Below, one piece after another: positions 5,189-62,135 of a DNA stretch of 64,000 nt (positions are counted from its first letter, which is position 1; each line of letters begins with the position of its first letter). Source of the stretch: Piromyces finnis finn (lineage: Eukaryota; Fungi; Neocallimastigomycota); contig MCFH01000071.1 of NCBI GenBank assembly GCA_002104945.1, positions 171,082 through 235,081 on the forward strand, in the 5' to 3' direction. The position numbers and the translations under genes are program-made. The notes under the pieces are model-generated. The model worked only from the letters and a program-made list of their open reading frames with translations. It was not told the DNA's origin and did not search any database.

Positions 5189-6335
5189 ATGGGTAAATAT
5201 TATATGTTGTATTTATGGATTAAATGAAATAAAAAAAGAGATGTTTATGTTTTTATAATTATGAATGGATGAATAAAAATTTTAAATAAAAAAAGTTTTG
5301 TAAAAAAATAATGTGGTATATGTTGGTGGTAGCGTTATTATTTATAATGGTATAATGTTCATTATAAATAATAAAGGGAAAAGAATGTAATGTTTAATGA
5401 GTAAATAATAATAAAAATTATTATTATGGATAAAATTAAAAGAAAAATGTAAATAATTCTATTCATATTAAAACGAAACTCTCTTTAAATGTATAAAAAA
5501 TGAAAATGAATCAATTTATTAACATTTTTATGAATTTTAAAAATAGGTATTAGCAGAGACAGTCGTCACAAGCGTAACGCTACCGGTGCCAAGCGCGCCC
5601 AATACCGTAAGAAGAGAAAGTTCGAAATGGGTCGTCAAAACTCTTTAACTAAGCTCGGAAGCAAGAAGATCCACACCATCAGAGTTAGAGGTGGTAATCT
5701 TAAGTACAGAGCCTTAAGATTAGATAGCGGTAACTTCTCCTGGGGTTCCGAAACTATTACCCGTAAGACTCGTATTGTTGCTGTTGTCTACAACGCCTCT
5801 GATAACGATCTTGTCCGTACTAACACTCTTGTCAAGAACGCCATTGTTCAAATTGATGCTGCTCCATTCAGACAATGGTACGAAACCCACTACGGTGTCG
5901 TTCTCGGAAAGAAGAAGGTAAATTTTAGTTGAAATAGATAAATTATAAAAATGAATATATTGTATAAAATGATGAATGTGTAATTAATTATGAATTTATC
6001 CTTTATTTTGAATAATAAAGGCCGATGAAGAAACTACCAAGGTCTCCAACAAGGTCCAACGTAAGCACGAATCCCGTAAGGCTCAAGCTGAAATTGAATC
6101 TAACATCAAGGACCAATTCGCTGCTGGTCGTCTCTACGGTAATTATCATAAATAATAATAGTAGACAAATAAAAAAAATGAAATGGTAAAAGTGCAATGA
6201 TGTTAATAATACATATTTTATAATATAATAGCCTGTATCTCCTCCCGTCCAGGTCAATCCGGTCGTGCCGATGGTTACATCTTAGAAGGAAAGGAACTCG
6301 ACTTCTACGTCAGAAAGATTAAGTCTAAGAAGTAA
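5189..6335 (+). CDS. RPS8: 40S ribosomal protein S8 (eS8); exons 5189-5192, 5547-5917, 6021-6138, 6232-6335 (198 aa)
   Basis: Spliced product [32 protein letters not shown]...[15 protein letters not shown]...[23 protein letters not shown] is unmistakable eS8. Strongly biased codon usage is typical of a highly expressed gene. Confidence 0.98.
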
Positions 6336-7315
6336 AAAGTGTATTAATATCAATATACATGTTTTAATACAATTTTTGACAACCTTAAATAAAGATAAAA
6401 TTAAAAAAAATAAAGATTTTTTTAATGTTCATGTTTTTTTGAGTAAATATATTTTAAAAATAAAATATAATTTTTTTTAGTATTTTAAATATTTATTATA
6501 TATAATATTTAAGAGTAGTGTGAATTATTATTTTAATAAACGAGATTAACATATAACAAATTTTATAAGAGTAAAAAGCAGTAAAAGAGGACGATACAAA
6601 TTCTTTTAAGTATATTTAAAAAAAGTAATGTTTGTTAATTATGATAATTTTTTTTGCGAAAAGAAAAAAAGGAGTTCTATATTTTTGAAGAGGAAGAGGT
6701 TTTTTAACTTAAGTTATTTGGATCTTACAACAGTGAAGGATACACCAAATACGAAAAGAAGAGGATGAATTGTAGAAAATGTGAATCTTTAGTTTACTGA
6801 AAAAAAAAAATATCACAAAGTATGTAGTAGAATATTGCCACCTAAAAAGTTTTTATAATTTTATGGTTATAAAATGTAGTTTACCCCGAGGCAAATTGGT
6901 TTCACTTTTAAGTTTTTTTTTTTTTTTTTACAGTAAATTTTTATTCAATGTTAATCTTGGAAATTAGAAACATTTTAATATTTGAAAGGAAAGGGAAAAA
7001 AAAAAAAATTCTCTCTTTTTTTTTTTTTTTGTTTTTCGTTTTTATTTTCAAGGTAAAGTTTTCGCATCATAAATAAACGATGCTATTTTCTCATTTATTT
7101 TATGATGCTATTGTTTCCCTTATACATTTCAAAAATAAAAAAATAAAAACTTTTTTTTTTTCTCATCTCCATTCCAATCCAATAAGCTACAATAAAATAC
7201 AATAAAAAATAAAAAAATAAAAAATAAAAAAAAGAGACTTTGTAATATTCAATGATACTGACTAAAAAATTTATAGTATAGGAAAATAAAAAAAAAAATA
7301 AATAAAAATATTTCA

Positions 7316-7346
<31 letters not shown>

Positions 7347-7512
7347 GTTAGTATGGTTACTGCGCAATCATTAAAATTATTTTTTTAATTGTTATTTGTT
7401 GTTTGTTGGCGTTGTTGTTTTCAATATTTTATTTATTTAGAAGAGGCTAAAAAAAAAAAAAAATCATGTTTATGACCTAAAATAAAAATTAAAAAATAAA
7501 TCTTTAATAATG

Positions 7513-7565
<53 letters not shown>
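7513..7565 (+). repeat. ~53-nt poly(A) homopolymer
   Basis: Directly visible; the length may be uncertain from sequencing. Confidence 0.9.
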
Positions 7566-7567
<2 letters not shown>

Positions 7568-8115
7568 TAAAATCTTTAAAAATATATTACCTACAACAGT
7601 AATTATTTTTTTTTTTTAATATAAACCTAATTTGAATACTATTTTTTTTTATATAAATTTCATTTAAAAAAAAAAAAAAAAAAAAAGGTTAAAAAGAATG
7701 CCTTGGATATATTCATTCGTAGTTGATTGGGATAATGAAGGATACTACCAGAATTAAAATAGAATAAAGTTGATTATTATTCCTAAACATAATCATAACT
7801 CCCCCGGCTATCTTTGTATCTGTCGTTATTATAGTAATACCGAAACTATTTTTTTTTTTTTTTTCATCATCATCATCATCATTAAATTTTAAATTGTTCT
7901 TTTATCAATACAATTCAAAGTATCTTTGTCCTCACTTAACTTTCTTGACCTTTTTTTTTAACTCTTTTCTCCAAAATACATAGAAGAAACCATATTATTT
8001 ATTTAATAAATTTTGTTGAAAAAGAAAAGGGAAAAGACAAGTAATAATTCAATTTATAAACATTTCCCTCTTTTTTTTTTTTCTTTTTCGGCGGCAATCT
8101 ATAGATGAAGCATTA

Positions 8116-8150
<35 letters not shown>

Positions 8151-8272
8151 AATGATAAAAACAAAAAATAAAGGTTCAATAGAATAAACAGTTTTTACCA
8201 CATTCATCAAAGTTTTTATATTCCAATAGATAAGAGGATTTCACAACTTTTTTTTTTTTTTTTTTTTTTTTA

Positions 8273-8467
8273 CTAAAAATCATTGTTTAGGTAAAACCAT
8301 TGAAAGGTTATCAAGAACACTAATGTTGTAGTGATAGAGCAAAGGAAGGTTCTGTAGGATTCTGTATATATAATCAGATGACCAGATTTAATATTACCAT
8401 TTTCATTTTCTTGAATGGAAATCTTAATAATTCCATAGGAAAGAGAAAGAGTGGGTTGAATGGACAT
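8273..8467 (-). CDS. Possible 64-aa small ORF with C-terminal hydrophobic segment
   Basis: ATG at 8467 opens MSIQPTLSLSYGIIK...TFLCSITTTLVFLITFQWFYLNNDF*. Sequence complexity is higher than in the flanks; no homology recognised. Confidence 0.2.
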   Translation of the reverse strand: MSIQPTLSLSYGIIKISIQENENGNIKSGHLIIYTESYRTFLCSITTTLVFLITFQWFYLNNDF

Positions 8468-10315
8468 ACACACACGCCATATTATTCTACTTGATAATGT
8501 AAACTTTTATTATTTCTTTTTTTTTAAAATAAAAAAAAAAAAATTAGATAGAGGGAGTAAGAAGGGAAGTATAAATCCTGTCTCCATACAATACATTTAC
8601 AGTATAAATGGCAAAGTTTATCAAACTATACCAATAGTTTTTATATACATTATTTTTTTTTTTTTTTTTTATTATTATTTTGTTATCGATAGTCATGGGT
8701 AACCTTACCTAATATAAAGGTTATAATATATAATTTTTAAGAAAAAAAAGGGAGAAACACTAAAAAAAAAAAACAAAAAAAAAAAAAAAAAAATTAAAAA
8801 AACATTTAATTCCAGATAGTTCACTGTTGAACTTTTAATCAATTATATATATATATATGGTTCATATAGTTTATACCATTAATTAAGAATGCTTTCATAT
8901 TTAAAATAAAAAAAAAATATATATATAAGAGTATCAAGTTCAATACTAAAGATAAAGCCAATACTTTGCCAAAACAATCATTGAAAATTCTAATATTTTT
9001 TTCTTTGTTTTATATTGTTTTTGGTTTGTTTTGTTTTCCTTTTCACCTCCTTCTTCTATGCTATCATTTAATTTTTTTTTTTTTTTTTTTTTTTTTGATG
9101 ATGATGATAAAAGAAGGAGATTCTATCTGACATTCATTAAAGGCAACAACAACAACTCTATACTATTATTTTTTAAAAAAAAAAAAAAAAAGACTAGAAA
9201 CTACATCCTACCCATTTTTTTTTATTCATTATATTTATTTGTGTTTAAATTTATTTTAAAATACATGTAAATATATATATTGATAATTTTTATCTCTTTA
9301 TTAGAGTAACCATGAAAGTCTTGATATAATTGTTGTCATTTAAATTATTTAATTGACCTTTTACCAACAATAAACCTAAATATGAATACTATTTAAAAAA
9401 AAAAAAAATAAAATAAAATTGGATAATCCTGTTTGTCAATTACATTATTATCTAATTGTAGGAAGAGATGATTTTATAATTTATTGAAATTAAACATAAA
9501 TATAGAGAGTTTATAAAGCATACTTCTTTACCTATTTACCTCACCTCACACTCCTATTCCTATTATCCTATTATCCCTCTTTAAAAGAAAAAAAAATCAA
9601 TTAACTGCACGATTTACCATAAAAAAAATTTTTTTTATATAGTTCAATGAATTTGTTAATATTAAAAAAAAAAAAAACTTTTTTAATACTAATTTTATTT
9701 TTATTATTTATTATTTATTATTTATTGTTGTTGTTGTTGTTGTTGTTATTTTATTTTGTTATTGTTATTATTTATAAAAAAAAATATATATGACATTGAT
9801 ATATATATTTAATGGAACTAGGTTGTTGCCGTTTTTTTTTTTTTTTTTCATTATCCTTGAATTTAAAAATTACTTTCTTTCACTCGTCCTCCGGTCATTT
9901 TGAAAATTTTATTTGTTCTATGATTAGTAAAAAAGGTTATTTTTTATTTTTTTTTTTTTTTTTTTACAAACATAAAATAATGCATCATATATATATAGTT
10001 TATCTAATATCAATAATAAAAAAAAAAAGGAATCCACCTACTAATTTATTTTAATAATAGATATAATTATATTATCTTTTTTCTTTTGAAAAAAAAAAAA
10101 AAGGTTTCAAAAATGTTAGGTAATGAAAGATTAGCAATAAACTTTCTATCTTTTTTTTTTTTTTTAATATCATTTCCACAGTCTTAATTTGTACAAACTA
10201 ACTATATTTCCTTTTTTATTTGATATACTACTATGTAGTAATTGTATATAATGAAATTATATTTCCCTTTTTCACAGGATATCCAATTTTTTAAGTCGTT
10301 ATATATAAATAAATC

Positions 10316-10361
<46 letters not shown>

Positions 10362-12507: not shown

Positions 12508-14644
12508 TTAACGTCTTTCGGTATCACCAAATCCTGAGTTTTTTTTTTTTTTTTTTTTAAATAAAATATTTCAAATAAATAATAAAAATTATAAAAAAGA
12601 AAAATAAATATTTAGTTATTATTGAATGAACATATTAATATTTTTTTTATTTTTTATTATTTTTAATAGTTGAATAAATTTATTAAAAAAAAAAAAAAAG
12701 GAATAATTACCATAAGCAGAATAAGTATGTGGTGGTGATGGTGTTCTTTCTCTAGTGAAAGAATTGGATCTTGATCTTGATCTTGATCTGGATCTGGATC
12801 TTGAACTAACAATAATTGATGTATAATAATAAAATATTAACAACAATAACAACAACAACAACAACATTATTAATAAAAAGGATCATTAAAAATAATTAAA
12901 TATGAAAAAAGCAGTAAAAATATATAAAAATAGAATATATTATATATAAATTTAATTACCTATTATTAAAGAAATTATTTGTAGTGTGATGATTATTATT
13001 TCTGCTACGAAGAAAATCAGCTGTTCTAAAACCACTCATAAAATCACCAAGTCTACTAGCTCTGGAAGAAGAATTACCTGAAAATAAATGATTTATTATA
13101 AATTATAAATAATAATTTTCATTACTATTACTATTACTATCACCAATTACCATTACTATTATTTTAAATTTTTTTTTTTTTTTTTATTTTTATTTTTATT
13201 TTCTTATTTTATTCTTATTTTATTACTCTTTTCTTTTCTTTTCTTTTCTTTTCTTTCTTTTTTTTTTTAAAATATTATTTTAAAAAATCTTACCATTATT
13301 ATTATTATTATTATTATTATTATCATTCCTATGATGATGATGGTGATGGTGACGATGATGTCTATCCTCCTCCTCCTCACTATTATTGCCATCATGTTCA
13401 TTTTCCCATGAACCGTATGGTGGTGGATTATCATTATTATTTTGGGATTCTTGACCTCTACGTTTTTTTTGCCATTTATTATACAACATAATACAAATGA
13501 TAATAATGACAACAATACAAATAAAAGTTATTCCTGAATCATCACTATTTTCTTTATTAGTTGCGGTATTTGGCTGATCATTGTAATAGAAATGTTGTTT
13601 TCCTTTTCCTGTTAAATATAATGAATCTAATATAGTTTATTTAAAATATATAATAATATAATAAAAAAATTATTATTATAAATACAAGATGTTATTATCA
13701 ATACTTTTTTTTTTTTACTAATAATATTAATAGTTTTACATACAACGAACTCCGCAACTACCACGAGTAATATATCTATCATCTTTATATAATAATAAAG
13801 TAATTAATAATTTATTCTTTTTTTTTTTTTTTACTATTCATTTTATAAAAGTATTATTTATGAATATCTTATTTTTTTACCTGGATTACTGTAACCTTCA
13901 CATGAAACCTTGGTGTAACCAATATAATAATAGTCTTCCAAAGGTGTTTCACATCGCCAACTAGCATTGTATCCATCAAATCCAACTTTATATATATAAT
14001 AAATGTGAAATGTAATAACCATTTCATTTATATATAAATCATTTAGAATTATTTTTTTTTGTTTTTAAAAATAACAACAATATATATATATATATACCAT
14101 TTATATATTTTAGAGTATAAAAAAAACTTACTTTGATTACATTGCATGGATGGTGGTTGGAAGTATTTACAACCGTCACCTTCAACACATTCCAACTTGA
14201 AAAAAAAAAAAATTATTATTATTGTGTGTATGTTTTTTTTTTTTTTTAAAAAGAACTCATAATAATTACAACAATAAAAAATTTATTTTACATTTATTAT
14301 TATTATTTTTCCATAAAAAAAAAAAAAAAAAAACTTACTTGGTTAACTCTAGAACGACGACCTTTAGTTTTTCTATTTTTATAAACAGTAAAGGTTTTCA
14401 ATTGTTCTAATAAAACCTTTTCTGGATCATTGTTGTTGTTGTTGTTGTTGGTGGTATATTCATAATTATTATTGGGGTAACCTTGGTTTCCATAGCCATT
14501 ATTAGGATAACCTTGATTAGCATAACCATTTTGGTTATTAGGATAACCTTGGTTTCCATAGCCATTGTCATATCTACCATTAGGATTTGGATAAATGTTG
14601 TTGTATCCATTGTTATTATTATAATTATAATTATTGTAATTCAT
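12508..14644 (-). CDS. SARAF: SARAF/TMEM66 (DUF1183) homologue; 8 exons 14644-14339, 14195-14132, 13985-13881, 13782-13744, 13626-13294, 13077-12960, 12805-12711, 12533-12508 (361 aa)
   Basis: Spliced product KVLLEQLKTFTVYKNRKTKGRRSRVNQLECVEGDGCKYFQPPSMQCNQIGFDGYNASWRCETPLEDYYYIGYTKVSCEGYSNPDDRYITRGSCGVRYSL matches the 6-Cys SARAF luminal domain as I recall it (KVLL...QLKCVGG...CQNKGWDG...WEC...SCEGY...YVLRGSCGLEY). It has one TM helix and the family C-terminus GFGDTERR. All intron phases are consistent. Confidence 0.9.
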
Positions 14645-15956: not shown

Positions 15957-18027
15957 TTATATATTGTATAAAAAGACAATAGTCACTATAGCTATTATTA
16001 TTTCGGCAATTTTACTGATAGAATTTATTACAGAAGAGCTTTCTTCTCTTTTTTCGTGTTTTGAATGATCAGAAAAACCGATGTTTTCTTCATCTTCATC
16101 TCTTTTTTCTATTTTTCTTAAATCAAAGTTGGTAACATTAGCATTTGGTTTTACCAAATCTTCATTGAAACATTCTTCGCCTGACCAAACGCCACGTTTT
16201 CTTAAATAACTATTATAATTCCAACCGATTGAATTTTTCATGTTACTTGGAGTAAAAATCCAAGAAGGATATTCTACTTCTTTAACCAATGGTGCTCTTT
16301 GTGCACCACTTGGGAATTTATATGAATTTACCCATGCTGGTTGAACATTATTACCAGTACATCTTGAAGATGGAATAGCATCACAGCACATGAACCATTC
16401 TTCAACAAATTGTCCATCAATCATAGTCCAAATTTTATCTTCATGTCTTCCAAACTTTGATGTTTCTACATCATAGCCATAGGATAAGGCATAGCCTTTA
16501 ATAAATGTATTTGCCTTTTTTTTTTTTTTTTTTAACATTTAATATATATATATATTTTTTTTGAAAAAAGATAAAAATATTATTACGATTATTATTATAT
16601 TGTAATTGTAAATAATTGTGATTATATAATTGTAAATATATTATTGTGTTTATATAATTGTAAATATATTATTGTGTTTATATAATTGTGTTTATATAAT
16701 TGTAAATATATTATTGTGTTTATATATTTGTGAATATATAATTGTGTATTTTTAAAATAAAAAGAGAGATTGAAATTATTTTTTTATATATATATATATA
16801 TAAAGTTAAAAGTTTTGTTTATTTCAATTGATTATTATTAGCATTATAAATAAAATTTATTAATGTTATAATAGATAAAAAAAAAAGTGAATATTATTTA
16901 TTTTTATAAAAATCAGTATTTATTAACAAATTAACAAGTTTTTTTTTAAATACTACTTACAACACCGTGTTGATTAACAATTAAAATTGGGTCATCTTCT
17001 GGTGGAAGATTATATATATAGTTAATAATGTCATCAAAACCACCACCACAACATACTTCTTCATCCGGATCTATCCCTAAGGATAAAGCTAAAGCATAAG
17101 TTTGATGATACTTTTTTTTTTTTTTAAAAAAATACATATTTTGTTAATTGATTTTGTTTATTATTGATTTTTTTAATTTTTTTATATATATATACTAACC
17201 ATACGACGAGAAGTATGGTGTCCACGATGACCATTGTCTTTTTATTTTATTTTTTTTTTTTTAAAAAAATAGTTTAATATTAATATTATTATTCAATATG
17301 AAATCAATGAAAAGTTTAATATTAATATTATTATTCAATATGAAATCAATGAAATGGCAAATATTAATATTATTATTCATTATGAAATCAGTGAAATGGC
17401 AAATATTAATATTATTATTCATTATGAAATCAGTGAAATGGTAAATATACAAACAATACACTATGACTATAGTTTACATAATATATATATATTTACATTT
17501 TTTTCCAATATATTTTTATTTATTAAAAAAAAAAAAAAACTTACTTATGAAATCTCCATTATTTTGTAATATAAAGTGTTGAGTAATGATACGTTTTGGT
17601 TGACGATAAAATGGTGCATTTGGACCAAAATTATTTGTCATACATGCAGCACGAAGCATACCTGTATAACCCTACCATTTCATATATCATATCATTTTAT
17701 AATATTAAAATTTTAAAAAAGTCAATATATATAAATATTTGTTTATTTATTATTTCGTTTGTTTGTTTGTTGTTATTGTCACTCTTTTTTTTTTTTTTTT
17801 CCCAAATAAAATGTATAATTTTTTTTATGAAATCTTACTAAACCATCGGATGGGTGACCGAGACCTTCCATTGAAGACATTGTTGAACCACCTTCAACCT
17901 TTTCATCTTCACTTCCAGTACCAGGTTTTTCAGCGTGAATTTGAACATAAACAACTCTTCCAAAACATTGCTTCTGCCATAATAATAATAACAACGTAAC
18001 AAATAAGATCGAATATTTATTATTCAT
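15957..18027 (-). CDS. Secreted, probably GPI/TM-anchored histidine-phosphatase (phosphoglycerate-mutase-like) family protein; exons 18027-17839, 17671-17545, 17237-17200, 17110-16961, 16514-15957 (353 aa)
   Basis: Signal peptide MNNKYSILFVTLLLLLWQKQCFG, then VYVQIHAEKP, GxxGxxRAxC, SRRMYHQT..LALSLG, CC, PILIVNQH, matching the small fungal RHGEKP...ILIxWxH family pattern. The C-terminus is hydrophobic (IAEIIIAIVTIVFLYNI). Splice phases are consistent. Confidence 0.75.
16623..16748 (+). repeat. Intronic minisatellite, 28-bp unit (tatataattgtaaatatattattgtgtt, made of 14-bp halves), ~4.5 copies
   Basis: Visible tandem array in the last intron of the phosphatase-like gene. Confidence 0.75.
17271..17440 (+). 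repeat. Intronic minisatellite, 42-bp unit x4
   Basis: Unit aatattaatattattattcattatgaaatcagtgaaatggca; reads as 14-codon periodic ORFs in the track. Lies in intron 2 of the phosphatase-like gene. Confidence 0.9.
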
Positions 18028-22706: not shown

Positions 22707-23133
22707 TAATTTTGGTCCAAATGCACCATTTTATCGTCAACCAAAACGTATCCGTATCATTACTCAACACTTTATATTACAAAATAATGGAGATTTCATA
22801 AGTAAACTTTTTTTTTTTTTTAATAAATAAAAAATATATTGGAAAAAAATGTAAATATATATATATTATGTAAACTATAGTCATAGTGTATTGTTTGTAT
22901 ATTTACCATTTCACTGATTTCATAATGAATAATAATATTAATATTTTCCATTTCATTGATTTCATAATGAATAATAATATTAATATTTTCCATTTCATTG
23001 ATTTCATAATGAATAATAATATTAATATTTTCCATTTCATTGATTTCATAATGAATAATAATATTAATTATAAAAAAAAAAATTAAAAGACAATGGTCAT
23101 CGTGGACACCATACTTCTCGCCGTATGGTTAGT

Positions 23134-29440: not shown

Positions 29441-32400
29441 ATGGCCGTGGTACGTCAATTATCTCATCAAAGCCATTTTATTTTATATTTTATTCTACAA
29501 TTGTGTCTTATATCAAGCCAATGGCTGGTTCAATCACAACAAGTAAAAATCACTTTTCCATTACAAAATGATAAAAAGAAATCATCATCATCAGTATATC
29601 CAAGAAGAGTTATTCTTAATAAGAGAAAGGTTCCAACAAGAAATGTAAAATTGGATAGAAATAGCTATTTAGCATTACTTTACGTTGGAGGATTTTCTCT
29701 TTGTATTATTTGTTTAATTCTTTTCCCAAACTTATACAGAAAACCATATCATTATGTCAAGGTAAAAAAAAAATACATATATATATATAATAATTTATTT
29801 AAAATAACAAACTTTTTTTTTTTTTGCAAAATACTAATTTTTTATTTCTTTCTATTTCTATCAATTGTTTGACAAACTAAATTTATTCTTTTTCATGAAA
29901 TGCCAATACCATACATTAAAATACTAACTCTATCCATTGTTTTTTATATATGAAATATAATATATATAATATATCAATACTAATACATTATTATGCATCA
30001 ATTCTTTTTATGGAATACTAATAATATATTAAATAATATACTAATAATATATTATTAATATATTATATATTATTATAATGCTATGATATATTTATAATAT
30101 TTATAATAATGATTTTAACATTCATCTTGTTTTATTTATATTATTGATCTTGACTTTTGTGCAATTTATATCAATAATTTTAACATTCATCTTGCATTGT
30201 TTATATTATTGATCTTGACTTTTGTGCAATTTATATCAATAATTTTAACATTCATCTTGTATTGTTTATATTATTGATCTTGACTTACACCATCATGTTT
30301 TTTTTTTAAAGAATTTATTGAAAAATTCAAAAATTCATGCTCTTTCTTTAAGCATTAAAAATTTAGTGGAAAAAGTGTTTAGTCATATTAAACATTCTGT
30401 TGAAATTGTATTAAATATCATCAATATTAAACTTATCCCAAAAATGGTTTTACGCCTTTTCCAATATTCTAAAAGTTTAATCATTTTTTACAGTAATAAA
30501 AATGTTATATATCAATGGTTAATGAAAGAAGACAGTATGTCTTCGGATAGCGATTGGGATTTGGAAAGTGGCCAACTTACAGCATCATCCCCTTTAATGG
30601 CCTATTCTTCTTCGAATCAACGTAATAATTCAAAAAATAATATGGTTCCAAAAAATAAAAAAGGTAATGATCATCATCATAAAAGAGGTTCTTCCAATAA
30701 ATTACATCATGGTTCACGGAATAAACCAGAAGCTCTTTTACCTGTAACTAATAGCCAAGTTGATGTTCAATATAGAATTGTGTCTGATCCTTTAACATCT
30801 CCAGTATCACCAGATAAAGTATCTAATAACTCACAACAGAATGTGATTGTAAATACAATGACCATGACTACTACCAGATCTACACCTTCTACTCCAGATA
30901 GTATTACAATGAAAATTGATGATGGTATCCCAGGAGGCCACTCAATGAGAACAAATAGTAGAGAAGCTGTTGTAGAAATTCTGGAAAAGTCTATTCCAAA
31001 TGATGATGGAAAGATGCCAATGAAATCTAATATGGCAAAATCTTCACCAAACACTTTTGATTTTACCCAACAAGAATTAACTTTAGCTCTTTCAAAAAAA
31101 GAACATCCTATAGAGTATCAAAGTGTTCAAAGTGTTCAAAATTACAATCCATATTTAACCAAACCATCAGCATCTTTTCCACCAAAAGAAGAAACCTCCC
31201 AGACAAATGAAGGCGCATCAAAAATGATACTAAAGAATGAATCTCTTTTGAAATTATCATCTTCCATGGCTGCTGGACAGACCATGACTTCATTAAAGGT
31301 TGCCCCACAAAAATCATTGGAAGATGATAAAAAAATAAAGGGAATATTAGTGAAAAAATTAATCACAGAAGATTTAGAAAACGATGGGGGTGCATTTGAA
31401 GTTGTAAATAAAAAGAGAGGAAAAAGAACGCATAAACATTCTTTATCCTTTTCTGTACCATTAACTTCAACTATTGAAGTTCCTTTGAAAAATTCATCCC
31501 ATAAACGTTCTTCTTCTTCTTCCTACTCCTCTTCCTCTACTAAACCTACTATAGATTCTGTTTCTGTGAATAATGCTATTTTCATTGGAAATAATTTCAA
31601 AACTGCTGCCGTCAAAAGTCAGACATCCTATTCTAATGCTGTTCAGTATTCTCAAAAGCAATTAAGAAAACGTTCTGTATCTACTCCTGTCGCATTAGAG
31701 AATAAGGTGTCATCTTCAAAAGTCACTCCCTCACCAACAAAGGATAGCTCTTCTATGACAACTAAAAATGAAAATTCAGCTGCTTCTACGGTTGTAGGTC
31801 ATATTCGCCGTTATTCCACTTCCATCATAGACAACAAATTAAGCTATGCTGATGTTCTTAACTCAAATATTCAATTTAATAAGGAACAAGAAAACGATGA
31901 TACCTTGAAAAATATGGAATCCTTAAAAAAGAATAATAAAAAGGTATCAAAGAATGCAGCGATCACTCGAAATGGTAATAATCCATCAGGAAATTCAGAA
32001 AATAACAAGAATCCATCAAACGACCATAACAATGGCTCTGCAGATCAAAACAATAGTCATGATCAACATTCCAATCAAGCCAATAATGGTCATAATACAA
32101 ATGGAAACAATAATAGTAGTGGTGGTAGTGGCGGTAATAACAATGGTAATAACAATAACAACAATGGTAATAACAATCCAACCACCACCGGAAAAGGAAA
32201 AAATAAAAAACAGAAAAAGGCCAAGAATGCCAATGGTAATGCGGATGAAAATGAAAATGAGGAAGGACCTACTGTTTCCAACCCTACCAAGAAAAAGGCT
32301 GCAAAAGTTAAAAAGGAAGCTAAAGCAAAAAATAAGGTAGCAGCAGTAGATACCACCACTACTCAAGGAAAAGCCAATGGAAATGAATTAAAGTCACCAC

Positions 32401-36175: not shown

Positions 36176-38030
36176 TTAAACATTAAAAGTAGTCTTGGTA
36201 CCATCACGTTTAAGTAAAGTAACCTTTGGTCCTTTACCAGAACTACTACTATTATTGGAATTATTATTGCTGTTGTTATTACTACCACCTTTCATGGAAG
36301 TCATAGAAGGTTTTCTACTGTAACCTTTATTTTTATTATTACTATTATTACTACCATTCTTTCGGCCAAAATAGTTGCGATTCGTATTGTTTGTATTACC
36401 ATTATCTCCATGACCATCACGGTTATCACGAGATTTTTGATTATTCTTATTATTACGGCTACCACCGTTATTATAACCACCACCATAACCATAGTTATTG
36501 CCAAAACCATATTTATTATTATTACCACTGAAACTACCATTATTTCTACGTTTATCCATTTTACCCTTACTGTTGTTGTTGTTGTTGTTACCACCATTAT
36601 TATTTGTAGTAGTAATAGTGGAAGTATTGTTATTACTGCTACTACCATTATTGTTGGTAGTATTCGTAGAACGTGTATCACTCATAACACTGAGATTTGA
36701 TTCACTATTGGTCTTGGATAAGTTTTCCATGGAATTATTGTTACTACTATGATTACTATTGATCGGGGTAGAGGTATCATTTTTAATTTTTGGACTATTA
36801 GGAATAGAGGATGGATTACTACTGTTATTACTACGATTACCACCATTATTTGTAGAGTTGCTGTTGTTGTTGTTGTTATTGTTGTTACTACTGTTGTTGG
36901 TATTAAGATCAGTTCTAGTCTTCATGACAATACTAATCTTTTTCTTTAAACCAGTACTACTAATACTTCGTCTCAATATCATGGTGGAAGAAGAATTATT
37001 CTTATTATTATTACTACTATTATTTTTATTGTTGTTATTGTTACTGCTGTTATTATCAGAATTATTTTTGGATTTTGATTTGGTGTCTTTAGTGTCTTTT
37101 GATGAAGCTTCCTTCTTTTCTTTTTGAAGTTTTTCTTGAAGTTGCTTTCTTTTCTCTTCTAATTCTTTTTCTTTCCTTTCTCTTTCTTGTAATTTAGCAA
37201 TATTAGCTAATTTGTTTTGTTCTAAACTAGCCTTTAAAGCATTCTTTTGTTGTCGAAGAGCATCTAAAAGTGGAGTTGACTTTGGTTTTTGAGGAGTAAT
37301 TGGATCAATGTAGGATATACCTGTTACCATGGAAGGCTGTATAATAATTTCAGTTTTTTGATTTTCAGTTTCTTCTGCTGCTTTTTCTTCACCTGAATTT
37401 TCTGGTTCTTTTGGTTTTAATGATTCTAAAAAGGCAAGATAATGGTGATCTTTTTTTTTTTTTTAACATTCATCATTATTATACCATTATACCAAATAAA
37501 ATAAACATTTTATGTAAAAATTAAAAAAAAAAAAAAATAGAATTATATGTATTAAATAATAAATTATTTTCATTAGTATCCCTTGCTTTACATAGTATAA
37601 AAAGTCAAACTATCCATAATTTATTAATGAATATAAAATATAAAATAAAAAAATTACCTTTTTCAATGGTATTTTGTTTTAAATCAACATTTTTTCTCTT
37701 TTTTGGAATCATTTGGTATAATGAAAATTCAACTAATGCTTGATATTCATTTCCTTTTTTTTTTTTTTTTTTGAATTAATGAATGAATGAATAAAAGAAT
37801 GAATGTAATGATAAATATTAAAAAAATAAATACATATATGGTATGTATATGGTATAGGGTATAGTTATATATGATGTGTTCATGAATATAAATAAGATTG
37901 AAATAGTAAAACAAAGTAATAAGTATAAACATAAATAATATAGGTTTTAATAATTTTTTTATAATTAGTTAAAATTATTGATAGAAATTAATTTTGAAAT
38001 TATTTATTTATTTTTATTTATACATATTAT

Positions 38031-38075
<45 letters not shown>

Positions 38076-38212
38076 GATTTCCTTACCTTTTGAATCAATA
38101 AACATATGGCCATCATATTCTTTAAAAAATTCAATCAAGGTTTCAATATTTTTAAAATTTAAATAAGCTCTTGAAAAGACATTTTCCTTGGCTTTACTGT
38201 TTTCCGTTTATT

Positions 38213-38247
<35 letters not shown>

Positions 38248-38777
38248 GTTGTTGTTATTTTTGTTATTATTAATTTGTTGTTGGTTTAATTGATATTTTT
38301 TTTTCAAATTTTGGAAATTGAAAAATGTAAATGTCATATCCATTGATAACAATGATTTTATTGAATATTATAAATAAAAATAAATTATTGTTAATTTTTT
38401 TATTATTATAATAATAATAATAATCACGTTGGAGGAAAAAATATATATATATAAACAATCAATTTATAATCGTAGTAATATATATATTATAAATTATTTT
38501 TAATTTTTATAATTTTTATCAATTAAATTCTACTATTTCTAAATAAATAAATAATGACGATAGCTATAAAGTTTTCTTTTGATTTAGTTTACCTTTTGCT
38601 TAATTTTCCTGGGTAATAGGATTTCCAGGTGATATTTTCTAACCATTCATTAATACTGTCATAAAAAACTTCTTCTGGAAGGTTTGGTGGAAGACGACGA
38701 ACAATAACTTTTGTTCTAGCTTTTAATTTCTTTTGATTTACTTGTTTTCTGGTATTCTTTTTAAGTTGTTTATTCAT
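36176..38777 (-). CDS. UPF3: Nonsense-mediated decay factor UPF3 (Smg4/UPF3 RRM-like domain); exons 38777-38593, 38196-38087, 37753-37658, 37449-36176 (554 aa)
   Basis: Spliced N-terminus KVIVRRLPPNLPEEVF...WKSYYPGK...FSRAYLNF...YDGHMFIDSKGNEYQALVEFSLYQMIP...NTIEKDHHYLAFLESL...STPLLDAL matches the UPF3 family; intron phases are consistent. Confidence 0.92.
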
Positions 38778-40265: not shown

Positions 40266-43200
40266 ATGGATTCAAAAAATTCAACATCCTCAGGAATTTC
40301 CAATGAAACCAATAATAAACTTTTCAAGGCTGTCGTAGGTACAGCCAAAGCAACTCAGTTTTTGATTCCAACCGAATATTCATTCTTTAAATCATCAGAC
40401 AAAAATTTTAGTAAATCTATAAAAAGAACCAATAAAACTTTACTTGATATTTGTAATAAATGTATCAATTATGTTAATAATACCAATGGAAAAGCTTTCA
40501 CAGATATAAACGATTTTTCTGATAACTACAAGGATATCGTTGAAGTTATGGATAATTTATTAGAAAAAGCTGTAAGTGTTCTTGCTTGTTTGAATCTTTA
40601 AATAGTATTGAAAATATATATATATATATTTGTACATTTCGATTTGAAATTATATTTCACCAATTTTAAACTGAAATTGAAATTGGGGAAATCTCTTGTT
40701 ACAACAAGTATAGAAATGAAAATAGAATATGCAATATACATTATACAATACCCATATATTATGTTTTGATAGATATTGCCATCACTCTTCATAAATCCAT
40801 AAAATTTTATATTTCAAATTAAATCATTAATTTTTTTTCTCTATTTTTATATAAATAAATGTATTTTATATATATAATACACCCATACCACTATTAAATC
40901 TATAAAATAAAAGGATGTTTGTATTGATGAAATTACAGGAAAAAGAAAGGCATACAATACTGCTGGAATCATAAAAACTAATCCACTTGTTGCTCAAATG
41001 AACGTAGATAATGACAATTCAAAAACCAGTAATTACAAATTACTTCATGCTCAAAACATTCTAAGACCACAACTTAAATTTGAAGATAAAATAGATAATT
41101 CTAATAATCCAGCTCCTTTAAAAATAAAAGTTAAACCAAATGCTAAAGTTCCACTTAATGTTATTGACGATGTTGATGAAAGTGGAAATCAAACTAATAT
41201 GGAAAAGTAAGTATTTTTTTTTTTTTATCATTATTTCTAGTATGATTTGGGGGAGGGAATTTCTAGATATATACCTATTATATTTATATACTATTTCTTT
41301 TTTTTTTTTTTTTTAATATGAAAAACATATATTTACTAATATTAAAATATATATATATATATTTATTATAATTATAACTATTATTGTTGTTGTCATTATA
41401 ATAATGATATGATAATTCATTATAATTTCAATTTCATTTACTCATCCTAAATTTTAAATTTTTCTATCAACATTTATTGTTAATTACAAAATATAAAGTT
41501 ATCATCCATACCAATATGAAATTGAACATATTGAATATCCAGATAGAATGTTCAACATTAATGAACCTATTATGCCAAAAGATTATGATCAAACTCCATT
41601 TACTTTTGTTGATACCAAAGAAGAATTTATGAAAATGATTGAAAAGTTAAATGTAGCCACTGAAATCGCTGTAGATTTAGAAGTATGTTCAAAAAATAAA
41701 CAACTCTATATAAAAAAACGGAATAATAAATCATCCATATTAAAAATCCGAATTTCTAATAAAACTTACAAATAATACAATAATATAATTCAAAAATATT
41801 AATTATTTTCTTAATATTACTATTTATATTTATTTACGCTTTTCTTTTCCCTTTAATATTTGCATATATTTGACATGATCAAACTAAATAGCATCATGAC
41901 TATCGTTCCTTCCAAGGTTTTACTTGTTTAATTCAAATTTCAACACGTACAGAAGATTGGGTAGTAGATGCTTTAGCCTTAAGAAGTCATATTTATCATT
42001 TGAACGAAAGTTTTACCAATCCAAACATTGTCAAGGTAAGAAAAAAAAAAAAAAAAAAAAGCATATCTAGAGAATAAAAGATCTACATACTTTATATTAA
42101 ATAAGAATAAGGATGATGATTTCTTTAATAATAATATTTTTTTTTTTTTTAAAAAAAAAAAAAAGGTTTTCCATGGTGCTGAATCTGATATTGTTTGGCT
42201 TCAATGTGATTTCGGTGTTTATGTTGTTAATCTTTTCGATACTTATCACGCCTCACATTTATTAAACTATTCTCAGCACAGTCTTGCTTATCTCTTAAAA
42301 TATTTAGTCAACTTTGATGCCGATAAGAAATACCAATTAGCAGATTGGAGAATAAGGTAATAAAAAAATTGTATAGATGTAAATTATAAATTATGTTATA
42401 TATCATACCTATCATATAGAATACACTTATTATTTACACAGTTACATAATTGTTTATTAATAAATTTTTATTTTTGATAATTTTATTTTTATTATATTAT
42501 ATATATATATATATATATATTTACTTTTCAATATTAAAAATATTGTTATTATTATTGTTATGTGACTGTTTCATTTCCTTTTTTTATGATAAATAACATT
42601 TAGACCATTACCAAAAGAAATGTTAAAATATGCTCGTGATGATACACATTATTTATTATATATTTATGATCGTATGAAGAATGATCTTATTGCTAATGGC
42701 GATCCAACCACTCATAATTTAATGAAAGTCACTTTAGAAAGATCCGAACGTACTTCTCTTAATGTTTATCACAAGGACATCTACAGTGAAGATGGTACTG
42801 GTAGATATGGTTGGCGTAGTATTATTCATCGTGATCCTAATGCAATTAATGGTGAACAATTTGCCATTCTTAAAGCCGTTCATAAATGGAGAGATCAAAC
42901 TGCACGTGAAGAAGATGAAAGTCCACGTTACGTTATGCCAAATCATATTTTAAGAAGAATTGCTGAAGTCATGCCAACAGATCCTCAAAGTATTCATGGT
43001 TGTTGTAATCCAATTCCACCTTTAGTTAGAATGTATTCCATGGATATTGCTCGTATCATTGAAAAAACACGTACTGAATTCCTCAAGCATAAAAAAGAAC
43101 ATGAGAAAAGATTTGCTGAAACTGCCAAGGTTTTAAAGGCTATGAAGGAAAGAGAAGAACGCGGACCAGTTCATCAATTCTTTGATAATGAAGAAGATGG

Positions 43201-44106
43201 TGATGAAGAAAATGGTGATTCTATTGAAAAGGAAGGTGTCCAAATGGACATTGATGAAGATGAAAATACCGAAAATCAACAAAGAAAAAAGATACCAATT
43301 ACCATTGCTGAAACTTCAACTCTTCTTATTCCAAGTGATGATGAAAAAGAAGATGATGATGATGATGGTAATACCACCAAGACAGAAGAAGATAAAAAAG
43401 CATATGATTTAATGCTTCAAATTCGTCAATCGCTTAAACTTGTTTCTCCAAGTGTAACCTTTTTAAAATCCACAAGTCAACCTGAAGCCACACCAAAATC
43501 TAAACCTTCTGTACCAGTCACTACCGCTAAACCAGTTACCGTTAAAAAGGAAGAAGAAGAGAAGAAGACCGAAGAAAATGAAATCTTTACCATATCAGAC
43601 ACCAAGACTAGCGGTAATAAAAGAAAAGCTACAGAATCTATTGAAGATTTACAAAAGCCAGCTGAAACTCAAGGAGGAGGTAAAAAGAAGCATAAAAAGA
43701 ATAAGCGTTCCAAAAAGAGAAGTAGTTCCACCACCACCGCCAATGAAGTTGCCACTTCTTCTGGTAAAGAAGGTGAAAAAGAAGGTGAAAAAGCCTTTGT
43801 ACCCTACGACTATGCTAATAATAAATCTGAAGTTATTGAAATGATTAAAGCTGAAGCTAATGCCAAAACTGTATTGGAAACTCATAAAGATAAACTTAAA
43901 AAGCTTAAAAACAATAAAAAGAAGGAAATCAACAAAACCTTTAAACCATTTAACGCTCTTCCAAATGAAGTCAAGGTAAAAAAAAAAAAAAAAAGAATAA
44001 ATAATATGATAATATAATATAAATAGTTTTTGAAATGGGGGGAACATTATTGATAATATAATAAAAATAGTTTTTTGAAATGGGGAAAAAAAAAAAAACA
44101 TTATTG

Positions 44107-44147
<41 letters not shown>

Positions 44148-44268
44148 TACTAATTCAATTATATATATATATCAAAATATTAAATAGTTTGCTGAAAAGA
44201 TTCAAAAGAATGCTGTTAATCCACGTTCCGGTAACCGTACCTACACCTTTAAGAATACAAAGAAATAG
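40266..44268 (+). CDS. RRP6: Exosome 3'-5' exoribonuclease RRP6/EXOSC10 (PMC2NT, DEDDy, HRDC); exons 40266-40571, 40914-41206, 41499-41682, 41892-42035, 42166-42356, 42604-43975, 44188-44268 (856 aa)
   Basis: Motifs [97 protein letters not shown], and C-terminal SGNRTYTF. Confidence 0.97.
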
Positions 44269-56307: not shown

Positions 56308-56347
<40 letters not shown>

Positions 56348-56380: not shown

Positions 56381-56427
<47 letters not shown>

Positions 56428-56544: not shown

Positions 56545-56583
<39 letters not shown>

Positions 56584-56608
56584 GTTATTTATTTATTTTT
56601 TATGATAT
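55545..56608 (+). repeat. ~1.06-kb degenerate (TATT/TAT/TTAG)n satellite
   Basis: Only T, A and G occur on the + strand between C55544 and C56609. Confidence 0.95.
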
Positions 56609-57054
56609 CATAATGACTTCATCGTCCTATATTTATTTAATTTATGATTAATATATTGTTATATATTATATTTCAATATATTTTAATATATGTTTGATTC
56701 AAATATCAATTTAAAAGAATGGCACTTCCATTATTGAAAAAAAGGCACTTCAGTTACATTACGTAGAATGTAATATGTAATGTATTAAATTTTTTCTTTT
56801 TATTTTCTTGCCATGGCAAACCAAAAAAAAAAGGTTGGTAACTTTTAAAAATGGCATCATCATAAAATTTTGGTCTTGTGAAATTGGAATAAAATGGCAT
56901 CATCCTTTCAGAATTTATTTAATAATTAATATTACATTTATTTAGTTAGTTACTATTAAATTTATTTAAATATATAATTATTCGTTTATTTATTTATTTA
57001 TTATTTCATTCTTTTTAGTTTAAAAAATTTTTAAAAAAATGGTATCATCATTTT

Positions 57055-57569
57055 TTAATGATGGCATCATTTTTAAAAAATTGAATTTTTTTTCCATCCT
57101 CCCCTTTACACCCCATTCCTTCCCTTCCTTTCCCCTTCAACCTTCCCATTTTTTTTATTATTACATTACGTAATTCTTTTGTTTTTTTGTAAATTAAAAA
57201 AGAATTCGTTCCTTTTTTAATTCCTACCAAATATAATAAATTGATTGCATATATTATAATATATGGTTGTATATATATTTCATATATTAATAATCAACTG
57301 CTCATATCAATGGATGTTCAACCAAAGAAGTCTTTTCCATCTATGAAGCCACCATTCTCATATATTATGATTATAATATAATATATAATATAATATATAA
57401 ATTAATTAAAATTGAGTATAATAAATGGATTTTACATTCAAGTCATTTAAATTTATTGCCTAATATATTATCATATATTATGAATATATTATGAATATAT
57501 TATAATATATAAAGGAACAGAGAATAGCTTAAAAAAAATTTTGGCCTAAAAAATGATACCATCACTTAA
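57055..57569. mobile_element. Possible degenerate MITE-like element with ~21-bp imperfect terminal inverted repeats
   Basis: ttaatgatggcatcattttt (57055) versus the reverse complement of aaaaaatgataccatcacttaa (57548-57569). Related atggcatcat motifs occur at ~56851, ~56895 and ~57039. No target-site duplication identified. Confidence 0.25.
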
Positions 57570-58437
57570 ATTTTTCAACCTAAAAAAATGACCTAAAAAA
57601 AAGTGGCCAACTTTATAAATTTCAGGCTTTTTTGGCTGGTTTTCATTGGGATCGATGTTAAATTTTATTTTAATAAAAAGAAATAAAGAAAAGATGCACT
57701 TTTTTAGGCTTAAAATGCCTAAATTTCTTTAGAGCCAAAAGAAGTGGTGCATCGCTCAAAAATATCAATTTTTATCTATTCTACTCATTTTTTTTATTTC
57801 ATTTTTTATACTAAAAAATTAATTGCGCAATTTTTTCATTAAAAAAATGTAAAATTTAATCAATTTATTAATTAAATTATTAATATGTTCACTAATTAAT
57901 TCATTAATATACTATTTTATTTAATTTCATTTAAATTTAAATGATTTTTAATATGATAAAAAAAAAAAAGTTTTTTTATTATTAAAAACATCACTTTTTT
58001 TTATTTTCCATCTTTTCATCTTTTCATCGAGATTGGTCTAAAAAGGAAAAAAAAAATAAACAGATTGAAAAAAGGTTCCATTTTTTTTTTAACTTTTTTG
58101 TGATATAAAGAAGAAAAAAAGGTAAAATTTTTAATAAAATCAAGGCTAAAAAGAAAAAAAGATTGAATCAATCAAATTTACTTTACATCAAACGCAAACG
58201 CAATTATTAGCACAACCAAAGAAGTATATACGCACACTCATTTAAATTACGCATAAATAATAATATACTTGTAGATAATCAATAGTTATTTATCAACAAC
58301 AATAACAACAAGCATAATTGGTGGATAAACTCTTTTCTTTTGAAAGATAAAAAATAGACCTACACACAACACATACATAGATTCATATCAATTATATATC
58401 AATTTTTAAAATTTTATTTTTATTAGCAATAAACAAC

Positions 58438-59343
58438 ATGTTATTAAAGAATATTTTATTATTTGCTGGTATGGCTTTTGCTATTCCATTATTTAAACGT
58501 GACGATGTTGGTGAAATCACTACTGAAGTTGTCACCAGTAGTAATGGTAAAAAAGTTACAGTTCAAAAAAAAATGGTTAATATCAGTCCAGTACTTAAAG
58601 CAGAACGTAAAGCATTTATTCCAGAAAATGAAGGAATAAAAGTTAATACCAAGGTCTGCTCAAAAGATCTTTTAGTTATGGGTAACAAAATTGAAAATCA
58701 TAATGCCTGTAAAAAATTCTACAATCGTTGTACTACCGTTGAATTAATATCTATTATGCTTTCTTACTACGGAAATTCTGCATTTGATTCTCTTGAAGAT
58801 GCCATTAAAGACGGAGCCTCCAAGGGAGCCATCTCTAGAAAATGTAGTTCTATTTTAATTAAAAATAAGATTTTCCTTAAAGATACTCAAATTATTGAAA
58901 CTATTATTGATAGTGAAGATACCACCTCCAACACTACTAGTGTAGAAAGCAATGCTAATGTTGACACAAAGGTCTGTAATAAAAATCTCTTAATCATGGG
59001 TAACAAAGTAAAGAATAACTCTGCTTGTAAAAAAGTTTATGATGCTTGTACTACTGTTGAATTATTATCTGCTCTTGTTTCCTTCAACGAAAGAAGTGAA
59101 CCATTCTCTATGGAATACATTATCAAAAATGAAGTTACCAAGGGTGCCATGTTGGAAAAATGTAGCGATATCTTAATCAATTCTAAAATGTTTTACAAGA
59201 ATACCAATGCCCTTCAACTCGATTCTACTACCGGATCTTCTTCTCTTAATAAGATTAAGGATATTAATGACATTTCTTGTGAAGGTTGTCAAGATCATCA
59301 ATTACAAAGTATTGAAAAAATGAATGAATCTGAAAACCTTTAA
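58438..59343 (+). CDS. Intronless secreted protein with two tandem 4-Cys helical repeats (301 aa)
   Basis: Signal peptide MLLKNILLFAGMAFA and dibasic site LFKR|DD. Two ~77-aa repeats: TKVCSKDLLVMGNK...ACKK...CTTVEL...KGA..KCS.ILI. Confidence 0.85.
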   Translation: MLLKNILLFAGMAFAIPLFKRDDVGEITTEVVTSSNGKKVTVQKKMVNISPVLKAERKAFIPENEGIKVNTKVCSKDLLVMGNKIENHNACKKFYNRCTTVELISIMLSYYGNSAFDSLEDAIKDGASKGAISRKCSSILIKNKIFLKDTQIIETIIDSEDTTSNTTSVESNANVDTKVCNKNLLIMGNKVKNNSACKKVYDACTTVELLSALVSFNERSEPFSMEYIIKNEVTKGAMLEKCSDILINSKMFYKNTNALQLDSTTGSSSLNKIKDINDISCEGCQDHQLQSIEKMNESENL

Positions 59344-60170
59344 ATAAGTGAGAAAAAAAATAATAGAGGAATCCAAACCTTTTTTTTTTTTTCTTAACCC
59401 AGAGTAGTCATGATGTATTTTTATTAAAAGTACAAAAAAAATCACTCTTGGTTTTTAAGTAAGGATAGGAAGAAATAAGGTAAAGGATTCTTTCAAAAAA
59501 AATGATATTTCATTTCTTTGATCTATACTTTTTGCAAGAAATGGTCATATTTAAAATTTTATTATCTATTATTAAATTTCTTTTTAAAAAAAAATAGTTT
59601 TAAATTTTTATCTATTATTTACATATATATATAATTCAATAGTTCAATAGGTATATTTTCTAATAGTCTACAATCAACAAAACAAGGCAAGATAAAAGTA
59701 AAAAAAAAAAAAAAAAAATAGAAAAATAAGGAATAAATATTGAACACGATTTATTTTTTGTTTTTTGTTTTTTTTTTTTTATATTTATATAGTTTGCTTT
59801 GATTTTTTGTTTTTTGTTCTTGTTTTGTTTTCCTATATATATATTATTATTTTTCATTTAATTCTATTTTATTAATTTTTTGATTTTGATGTTTAATTTT
59901 CTTTTATAAAAAAAATGATATAAAAAAAGAATTTTTTTTTTTTCTTTTTTTCACTTTTTTATTTTATGTATTTAATATAAAAATGAGAAGGAGAAGGAAA
60001 AAAGTTTTAAAATTGTATCATACTAAAAAAAAAAATATTTTAATAAATATATATGTCTACATAATAAAAAAAAAAAAATGTGTGTGTGTGTACATGAGGG
60101 ATAAGCGTGTGTTATAAGGGGAAAAAGAAAAATGTAAATTTTAGAAACAAAAAAAAAAAAAAAAAAAAAA

Positions 60171-62135
60171 CTATTTATCGATAGCATGATGTCTAATTAA
60201 ATAGTTAGCGAGAGCCCTATTACCATTTTTACGAACAATTTTTAATGGTGTATCTCCATGACAAGTTTTAAAATTAATATCTGCCCCATAATCCACTAAA
60301 ACTTTGACAATGGTATCATGTCGATTTAAGCAGGCTAAGGTTAAAAGTGTATGACCATTTGGATATACCTTGTTAATATCCCCACCTTGTTCTATGAAAT
60401 AGCGTAATAGAGGAATATTTTCATGATGACATACAATCTTTAAGGGGGTATCATGGTAAGCATTCGCTTTGTTAATTTCAGCACCACATTCTACTAAACA
60501 TCTAGCCAAGACTCTATCATCTTTTCGACAGGCACAAATCAAAAGAGGATCACCATGACGATCATTAGAATTAGGATCGGCCCCATGATCTATTAAAAAG
60601 GTGACTAGGTATATATTTCCTTTTTCACAGGCCAAGGCCAGAGGTGAAGGACCATCTGATGTTTGATAGTCCATGGCCCCATAATCTATTAACAGTTTAA
60701 CGGTATGACTAACCCTTTGATCTTCATGAAGATGACAATCATTAAAGCATGCCAGGTATAAAGGTGTTTCACGCTTTTTATTTTCTTTATTGACATCAGC
60801 ACCATGATCTAGGATATCCCCGATCACACTTTCATAATGATCATTTCTTATAGCCATCAGTAAGGCTGTATCCCCATCCTCATTTTCAATCGTCACATCA
60901 GCACCATGATCCAAAAGAAATTTAATTATCTTTTTACCAACCTTCTTTTCTTCATTTTGACAGGCGATCATTAGCATAGAATTGCCATGGCTATCCTGTT
61001 TATTGATATCCGCACCATGATCTATGAATTTTTTAATCATATCTTCATAGTGGGTTTGTCTTTTTAAAAAAGCGTCTTTTTTTTCCTTTTCTTTTGAAAA
61101 AGGTGATATTGACGATGCCGCTGTGGTCGTCTCTGTAGAGTCATGATCTAGCATATATTTCATATAATTATTAATGTAAACGGTTAAAGGAGTCTGACCA
61201 TTTTTGTTTTCTTTATTGATATCGGCTTCATGATCCATTAAATCATGTAGAATGACTTCATTTTCATTTTTACATGAAAGGATTAATGCTGTATAACCAT
61301 ATTGATCTTGATAATTGACGTCAGCACCATAATAGATTAAAAGTCTCACAATGGAATCATTATTATTTTTTTTACAGGAAAGGATTAAAGGAGAATTGCC
61401 TTGGGCATCAATTTTATTGACATCAGCACCATGATGAATTAAAAAATCGACAATGACAACATCCCCATTTTGACAAGCCGTCATTAAGGGAGTACCACCA
61501 TACCTATTTTCTTGATTTACCTCGGCTCCATACTTGACTAATAATTCTACCATTTTAACATCCATTTTTTTACATGCGGCAATTAACGGTGTATTACCCT
61601 TTTTATTTTCTTTATTTAAATCAAGAATGTCCATATTACCTAATAAATATTCTCTTAACTTTCTTTTTGAGGAGGTGGAAGTAGAAGAAAAAGAAAAAGA
61701 AATGTGATCATCTAACAAATTCTTGAGAATATACTCCACTTTACTATAGTCTTTTTTTTCTATTAATAAAACTAAAAAATCAGGGGTAATGTTGGTATGA
61801 ACTTCCCTTTGAATAAAATGTTTTAACTTTTCCATAGTCATTTCACCATTTTTATATAGGGTATAAAGTATATCTGCTGTGGGACTTGTAGTAGTGGCAG
61901 CACATTTTTCCTTTTCTTTATTAAATAGTGTGAAATGAAAAATACACAAAGACACCGTTTTTCAATAAATGTAAATATAAATAGAAAATAATGTTTTTTT
62001 AATTTTTTTTTTTTTTTTAATATTTTTATAAAAATGTTGTTGTTGTTGTTGTTGTTGTTGTTATTGTTGTTTTTCATTACCTTTCATCCTTTGATATTGA
62101 AGCAATTCATTAATTTCAAATTTTACTTTATCCAT
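60171..62135 (-). CDS. Ankyrin-repeat protein (~13 repeats); exons 62135-62081, 61915-60171 (599 aa)
   Basis: Repeated GxTPLxxAC...LIxHGADVN motifs. The upstream exon MDKVKFEINELLQYQRMK G|gtaatg splices in phase to aataaag|AA. Confidence 0.93.

Follow-up and report, generated by a model that had tools for sequence, protein, structure and literature searches.

The window analysed here is a 64,000-nucleotide stretch of the genome of the anaerobic gut fungus Piromyces finnis (assembly GCA_002104945.1, contig MCFH01000071.1, positions 171,082 to 235,081 of the forward strand), and our subject is the 3′ splice sites of its introns, many of which end in AAG. The assembly comprises 56,455,805 bp in 232 contigs at about 20% G+C; G+C in the window is about 16-29%. 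Pfam searches of open segments located RRP12 (1-4300, plus strand), RPS8 (5156-6335, plus), SARAF (14671-12977, minus), UPF3 (38777-36179, minus) and RRP6 (40266-44262, plus), together with a DER1-like protein and an ankyrin protein; a further gene of five exons at 18027-15960 on the minus strand is referred to below as the 16-18 kb gene.

A pyrimidine at the base preceding the acceptor AG (position −3) is, to our knowledge, one of a handful of features shared by nearly all 3′ splice sites. Twelve of the 25 supported introns in the window lack it and end in AAG, while 11 end in TAG and two in CAG. The first-pass annotation of this DNA had described AAG acceptors as very frequent, at 14 of 34 modelled introns: the high frequency stands and all 12 supported sites appear on its list, but its denominator of 34 was not reproduced, and the other two sites, in a large protein and in the ankyrin protein, are frame-consistent only. 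Exon-by-exon homology fixes 10 of the 12; the remaining two, RRP6 introns 1 and 2, are placed by frame, stop codons and an HPYQYE motif.

Intron reconstruction

Introns were rebuilt with a three-periodic codon model and a non-coding Markov model, both trained on the window together with a further 84 kb drawn from elsewhere in the genome (L002-L014); using non-overlapping coding anchors, we enumerated all GT..AG pairs consistent with frame and stop codons. This content model alone ranked the AAG acceptors of the first-pass annotation first, and training of splice signals by expectation-maximization from a flat start left the acceptor choices unchanged. Exons were searched singly, the test being whether neighbouring exons abut in profile or homologue coordinates, and junction evidence came from continuity of Pfam profiles, from PDB alignment or from intronless homologues. 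Removal of the introns restored the frame at conserved protein positions, with contiguous Pfam positions and with exons that abut in intronless homologues. All modelled introns end in AG as a condition of the search; the terminal AG was independently confirmed at the homology-exact junctions and by the comparison of two contigs of a relative, L024 and L019, described below.

For base composition we pooled 63 introns, 39 from P. finnis and 24 from loci of Piromyces sp. E2 and Anaeromyces robustus. A further 16 introns, kept outside this pool, came from contigs L019, L020 and L025 of a close relative sampled by metagenomics, hereafter the metagenome relative.

AAG junctions in the window

RPS8 intron 2 (5918-6020, plus strand) runs from donor GTAAAT to acceptor AATAAAG, and its flanking exons abut at residues 125/126 of 198-residue homologues; the coding exons of the gene correspond to residues 3-125, 126-164 and 166-198 of these proteins, with the second junction at 164/165/166. 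The nearest proteins to RPS8 are those of Piromyces sp. E2 and A. robustus, at 97% identity. Introns 1 (about 5196-5546) and 3 (6139-6231) of the same gene end in TAG, as do the four introns of RRP12 (778-1014, 2842-3085, 3881-3975 and 4059-4183, plus strand).

SARAF has three AAG introns on the minus strand. Intron 1 (14196-14338), whose acceptor is a T run followed by CAAG, is the top frame-consistent pair; the exon before it reaches to about position 47 of PF06682, and the one after it is too short to match a Pfam profile. Downstream of intron 2 (13986-14131, acceptor ATATAAAG), the exon beginning GFDG aligns to PF06682 position 74 from its first residue. Intron 3 (13783-13880) ends in TATAAAG, and exons 3-5 cover profile positions 74-107, 108, 109-120, 121 and 122 onward, which are contiguous. 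The remaining two SARAF introns have YAG acceptors (13627-13743 and, with CAG, 13078-13293).

UPF3, also on the minus strand, matches PF03467 at positions 2-45 and then 49-83, 84, 85-115, 116 and 117 onward. Intron 2 (37754-38086), which ends in a long A run followed by G, falls at 83/84/85 with 84 as a split codon, and intron 3 (37450-37657), again an A run then G, falls at 115/116/117; because these profile positions are contiguous, the A-run AAG acceptors at 37754 and 37450 are exact. UPF3 intron 1 (38197-38592) ends in CAG. An in-frame TAG lies at 37426 on the same strand, 24 nucleotides downstream of the AAG acceptor of intron 3; this TAG could serve as an alternative 3′ splice site, and its use would drop eight residues.

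In RRP6, intron 1 (40572-40913, plus strand, acceptor AATAAAAG) was placed by frame and stop codons: exon 1 stops at position 82 of the 91 in the PMC2NT profile, and the in-frame acceptor candidates, 40913 and 40949, are both AAG. Intron 2 (41207-41498) ends in ATATAAAG, and the start of the following exon, YHPYQYE, aligns from its second residue to yeast Rrp6 (2hbj_A, from residue 55); since the open frame of this exon begins at 41497 with a stop codon just upstream, intron 2 has no alternative acceptor. Intron 4 (42036-42165), ending in a run of 14 A and then G, falls exactly at PF01612 79/80, exons 3-6 lying at profile positions 2-28, 29-79, 80-142, 143-144 and 145-172. Introns 3, 5 and 6 (41683-41891, 42357-42603 and 43976-44187) end in TAG.

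The 16-18 kb gene begins with a TAG intron (intron 1, 17672-17838, minus strand) and continues with three AAG introns. Intron 2 (17238-17544, acceptor ATAAAAAG) is followed by a micro-exon of 38 nucleotides (17200-17237), which encodes NGHRGHHTSRRM and is flanked by AAG acceptors, with intron 3 (17111-17199) ending in a run of 14 A and then G; intron 4 (16515-16960) ends in a run of about 19 A and then G, and no other AG lies between the in-frame stop and the exon. The five exons abut without gap or overlap in the intronless homologues P0124, P0125 and P0127, the junctions in P0125 being 48/49, 90/91/92 (intron 2), 103/104 (intron 3) and 153/154 (intron 4), and the micro-exon peptide is identical in homologues at 11-12 of its 12 residues. 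The gene had been labelled a phosphatase; that name is without Pfam support, a Pfam search of the gene having returned no family, and the product has the look of a secreted protein that is specific to the lineage and anchored at its C terminus. Inside intron 2, at 17261-17461, we observed a tandem repeat with units of about 33 nucleotides, which recurs in inverted orientation at 22820-23086, 5.5 kb away.

The two frame-consistent sites outside the supported set are both candidate introns joining a first exon in frame. That of the large protein (29762-30311, plus strand, acceptor TTTAAAG) would connect a 107-codon first exon to an open reading frame (ORF) of 1,388 residues, and that of the ankyrin protein (61916-62080, minus strand, acceptor AATAAAG) a first exon of 18 codons. 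Tandem copies of about 60 nucleotides (...ttttaacattcatcttg...tattgatcttgactt...) at 30100-30290 occupy the 3′ half of the candidate intron of the large protein. For the listed junctions at conserved motifs, the earlier claim that no YAG alternative exists is borne out.

RNA-like evidence

Two intronless contigs in ENA that resemble complementary DNA (L017 and L018), each with a 597-nucleotide ORF and untranslated regions, align to the RPS8 gene of the window at 88-97% identity, in four blocks with edges at window positions 5195, 5917/5918, 6018-6021, 6138 and 6231. For intron 2 the sole GT..AG solution ends in AAG. The NCBI/JGI annotation of RPS8 in Piromyces sp. E2 uses the orthologous AAG acceptor.

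An intronless JGI contig, L024, aligns to the genomic contig L019 of the metagenome relative in three blocks at 99.2-100% identity. Here the sole GT..AG solution for RPS8 intron 2 is 1296-1391, ending in AAAAAG and passing over a TAG at 1355 that is open and in frame, 36 nucleotides upstream of the AAG. Our content model had wrongly favoured this TAG; as its single error went towards TAG, the errors of the model do not favour AAG. Exact-junction scans of JGI metagenome contigs, one with the KRR1 junction of the relative and one with the RPS8 junction of the window, gave 0 matches each.

Composition of acceptors and donors

Over the 63 pooled introns the base at −3 was A in 31, T in 28, C in 4 and G in none (A 49%, T 44%, C 6%), and the intron interior was A 0.452, T 0.439, C 0.058 and G 0.052. 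The ratio of A, T and C at −3 therefore equals the intron background, and only G is missing (0/63, p = 0.035); with A in 31 of 63, the pyrimidine that marks the YAG class of acceptors is not a property of these introns. For P. finnis by itself, 22 of 39 introns end in AAG (95% confidence interval 40-72%), which departs strongly from a norm of 10% A (p ~1e-12) and shows no excess over the intron background of 45% A (p = 0.2).

The bases upstream of −3 are themselves skewed. A occupies −4 in 46 of 63 introns (73%, p = 1e-5), and from −15 to −4 A outnumbers T in 43 introns and T outnumbers A in 15 (totals of 435 A and 272 T), while from −25 to −16 T exceeds A in 37 introns and A exceeds T in 19. 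There is no polypyrimidine tract directly upstream of the AG, T-richness being confined to −25 to −16, and the 3′-end consensus looks like A-W-A-G. Runs of 10-18 A abut the terminal G in 6 of the 31 AAG sites. AG is strongly depleted near the acceptor, with two occurrences in 1,890 positions across the last 30 nucleotides against 1.4-1.8% farther upstream. YTAAY motifs peak 25-40 nucleotides upstream of the acceptor, in small counts and for a motif that is common in AT-rich DNA. The first exon base is G at 12 of the 31 AAG sites, and no compensation is evident there.

Donors are uniform: GT in 63 of 63, with A at +3 in 95%, A at +4 in 81% and T at +6 in 79%, the commonest hexamers being GTAAGT, GTAAAT and GTAATT. 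The description of these sites as non-canonical does not survive this result, every intron being GT-AG with a U1-type donor. We also considered U12-type introns, with a [AG]TATCCTT donor and a TCCTTAAC branch box; no donor resembles GTATCC or ATATCC, and the U1-type donors rule out introns of the minor spliceosome. Non-GT-AG terminal dinucleotides were likewise rejected: all junctions are GT..AG, and the departure from consensus lies only at −3.

Comparison with relatives and known systems

Comparison of contigs L015, L016 and L020 with window positions 1-6335 shows that the order RRP12-RPS8 and the intron positions are kept in Piromyces sp. E2, A. robustus and the metagenome relative; KRR1 comes after RPS8 in A. 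robustus and the metagenome relative, an arrangement that the window does not share. In small samples, AAG makes up 3 of 9 introns in Piromyces sp. E2, 6 of 15 in A. robustus and 2 of 16 in the metagenome relative, against 22 of 40 in P. finnis. Five of the seven KRR1 introns of A. robustus end in AAG, two of them exact against KH-domain profiles. These sister anaerobic gut fungi resemble P. finnis in intron positions, A-rich ends, A at −4 and the use of AAG.

The metagenome relative differs at −3 itself, with T in 12, A in 2 and C in 2 introns and A at −4 in 15 of 16, although its intron interior (A 0.48, T 0.42) is as AT-rich as that of P. finnis; the difference at −3 between the two is significant (Fisher p = 0.006, or 0.04 with the in-window set only). 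In the 16-18 kb gene, introns 2-4, which end in AAG in P. finnis, all have TAG in the metagenome relative, with identical exon boundaries. Across L025:2816-3910, which corresponds to window positions 17838-16515, all four introns of the relative end in TAG, against three of four in AAG in P. finnis, and one of the L025 introns of this orthologue has a run of about 29 A followed by TAG. At RPS8 intron 2, A. robustus has T at −3, and the other three (P. finnis, Piromyces sp. E2 and the metagenome relative) have A; in KRR1, A. robustus and the metagenome relative carry different bases at −3 in 4 of 7 introns. Exon boundaries at these orthologous introns are likewise identical.

Set against canonical U2-type GT-AG introns, the introns of the window are alike in their U1-complementary GT donor, terminal AG, length of about 90-450 nucleotides and exact restoration of the frame. 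They differ from canonical YAG/G introns in having no pyrimidine preference at −3, an A-rich final 12 nucleotides and mostly A at −4. YAG/G is the acceptor consensus (PMC10946897), and a survey of 50 eukaryotes gives terminal YAG for most species (PMC2483917). The AG-free zone of about 30 nucleotides before the acceptors recalls first-AG choice in yeast and mammals. In yeast and mammalian splicing AAG is a tolerated minority, whereas here it is not a minority class. Very AT-rich introns with a weak branch consensus are also shared with Plasmodium falciparum and Dictyostelium discoideum. A at −3 is raised in both of these AT-rich species as well, but T is probably still clearly more frequent than A there, while in our introns A is at least as frequent. 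Introns in the two species are about 87-89% AT according to the survey (PMC2483917).

Our full-text literature search found no description of −3 usage in anaerobic fungi, and an earlier description is possible: a review credits Nicholson et al. 2005 with 'rules governing intron boundaries' for Orpinomyces (PMC5622200).

Discussion

We consider it probable that these are ordinary U2-type GT-AG introns in which the acceptor is the first AG after an AG-free stretch, the base at −3 is unselected except against G, and the 3′ end is A-rich. On such a scheme the acceptor would be whichever AG comes first beyond the branch region, once a long zone free of AG has been passed. The base before it would not be selected for a pyrimidine: A, T and C occur there at their intron-background frequencies and only G is avoided. 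The last dozen or so bases are A-rich, often with homopolymer A runs, and many acceptors therefore have the form AAAG or consist of an A run and a final G. We infer that first-AG scanning is the rule of selection, and that discrimination between purine and pyrimidine at −3 is relaxed in this lineage, whether by changed recognition or by ineffective selection. In the AAG pattern the preference at a single position is relaxed; it is a variant of a known signal at the level of the lineage, and not a new type of splicing.

One competitor is base composition: introns of about 90% AT could drift to about 45% AAG with recognition unchanged, as in AT-rich eukaryotes. The agreement of −3 with the intron background, in which C is not enriched, is what this would produce. 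However, TAG satisfies AT pressure equally well, so a residual preference for T should show, and in the metagenome relative it does (T 12, A 2); reaching the background would itself imply that discrimination has been lost. TAG and AAG have the same AT content, so a preference for T could not be lost through mutation bias alone, and as an equally AT-rich relative keeps T at −3, composition alone does not set the share of AAG. We regard composition by itself as unlikely. The first-pass annotation had offered either relaxed −3 recognition, with U2AF35 or Prp8 as candidate factors, or AT pressure; with A:T:C at background, relaxed recognition fits better, whereas AT pressure alone does not account for the relative that keeps T. 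Rather more doubtful is a positive A-tract signal, in which the A-rich tail, −4 and −3 included, serves as a recognition element or keeps the acceptor unstructured and AAG is a by-product. In its favour, A occupies −4 in 46 of the 63 pooled introns and in 15 of the metagenome relative's 16, A predominates from −15 to −4 downstream of a T-rich −25 to −16, and A runs of 10-18 abut the G at 6 of 31 AAG sites. Against it, A at −3 does not exceed background, T is the usual −3 base in the relative where A at −4 is strongest, and homopolymer runs of A and of T are common throughout the genome.

That the AAG sites are artefacts of gene models, forced by frame with the true acceptors being YAG elsewhere, seems to us highly improbable. 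Two of the 14 sites originally listed are supported by frame only, and the content model once mis-picked an upstream TAG, yet Pfam profiles or intronless homologues place ten of the AAG junctions in the window exactly, the JGI/NCBI annotation of Piromyces sp. E2 uses an orthologous AAG, and L024 proves one AAG in a relative, the sole model error having been towards TAG. A stronger form of our own interpretation is conceivable but falls short of likely: that the P. finnis lineage has lost purine/pyrimidine discrimination at −3, that gut fungi use an A-rich 'AWAG' end in place of the pyrimidine tract, and that recognition by the U2AF heterodimer or by second-step factors has changed and differs between sister genera of equal AT content.

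Several points weigh against the interpretation of first-AG choice with an unselected −3. The first-AG rule is drawn from AG depletion alone, and the sample is small (39-40 P. finnis introns, 63 overall), with 15 P. finnis introns outside the window that depend mainly on the content model and include a few weak cases. The RNA-like contigs are not from P. finnis itself. P. finnis and the metagenome relative are contrasted over gene sets that differ, with nine matched introns between them (A in 4 in P. finnis against 1). Finally, the RRP12 introns and RPS8 introns 1 and 3 end in TAG in every taxon compared, for which reason weak selection for T may persist in some genes.

These results bear on how gut-fungal genes are read. 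Gene finders and splice-aware aligners trained on YAG acceptors and pyrimidine tracts will mis-call acceptors in anaerobic gut fungi, a group mined for biomass-degrading enzymes; the micro-exon and the A-run acceptors of the window are easily missed. If composition and weak selection explain everything, the outcome is a useful annotation rule and nothing beyond. In animals, U2AF35 reads the base at −3, and mutations in U2AF35 shift the preference at this position in cancer. If relaxed discrimination in P. finnis is true, a lineage in which A is as good as T, beside a sister of equal composition that prefers T, would be a clean comparison for the factor that sets the preference.

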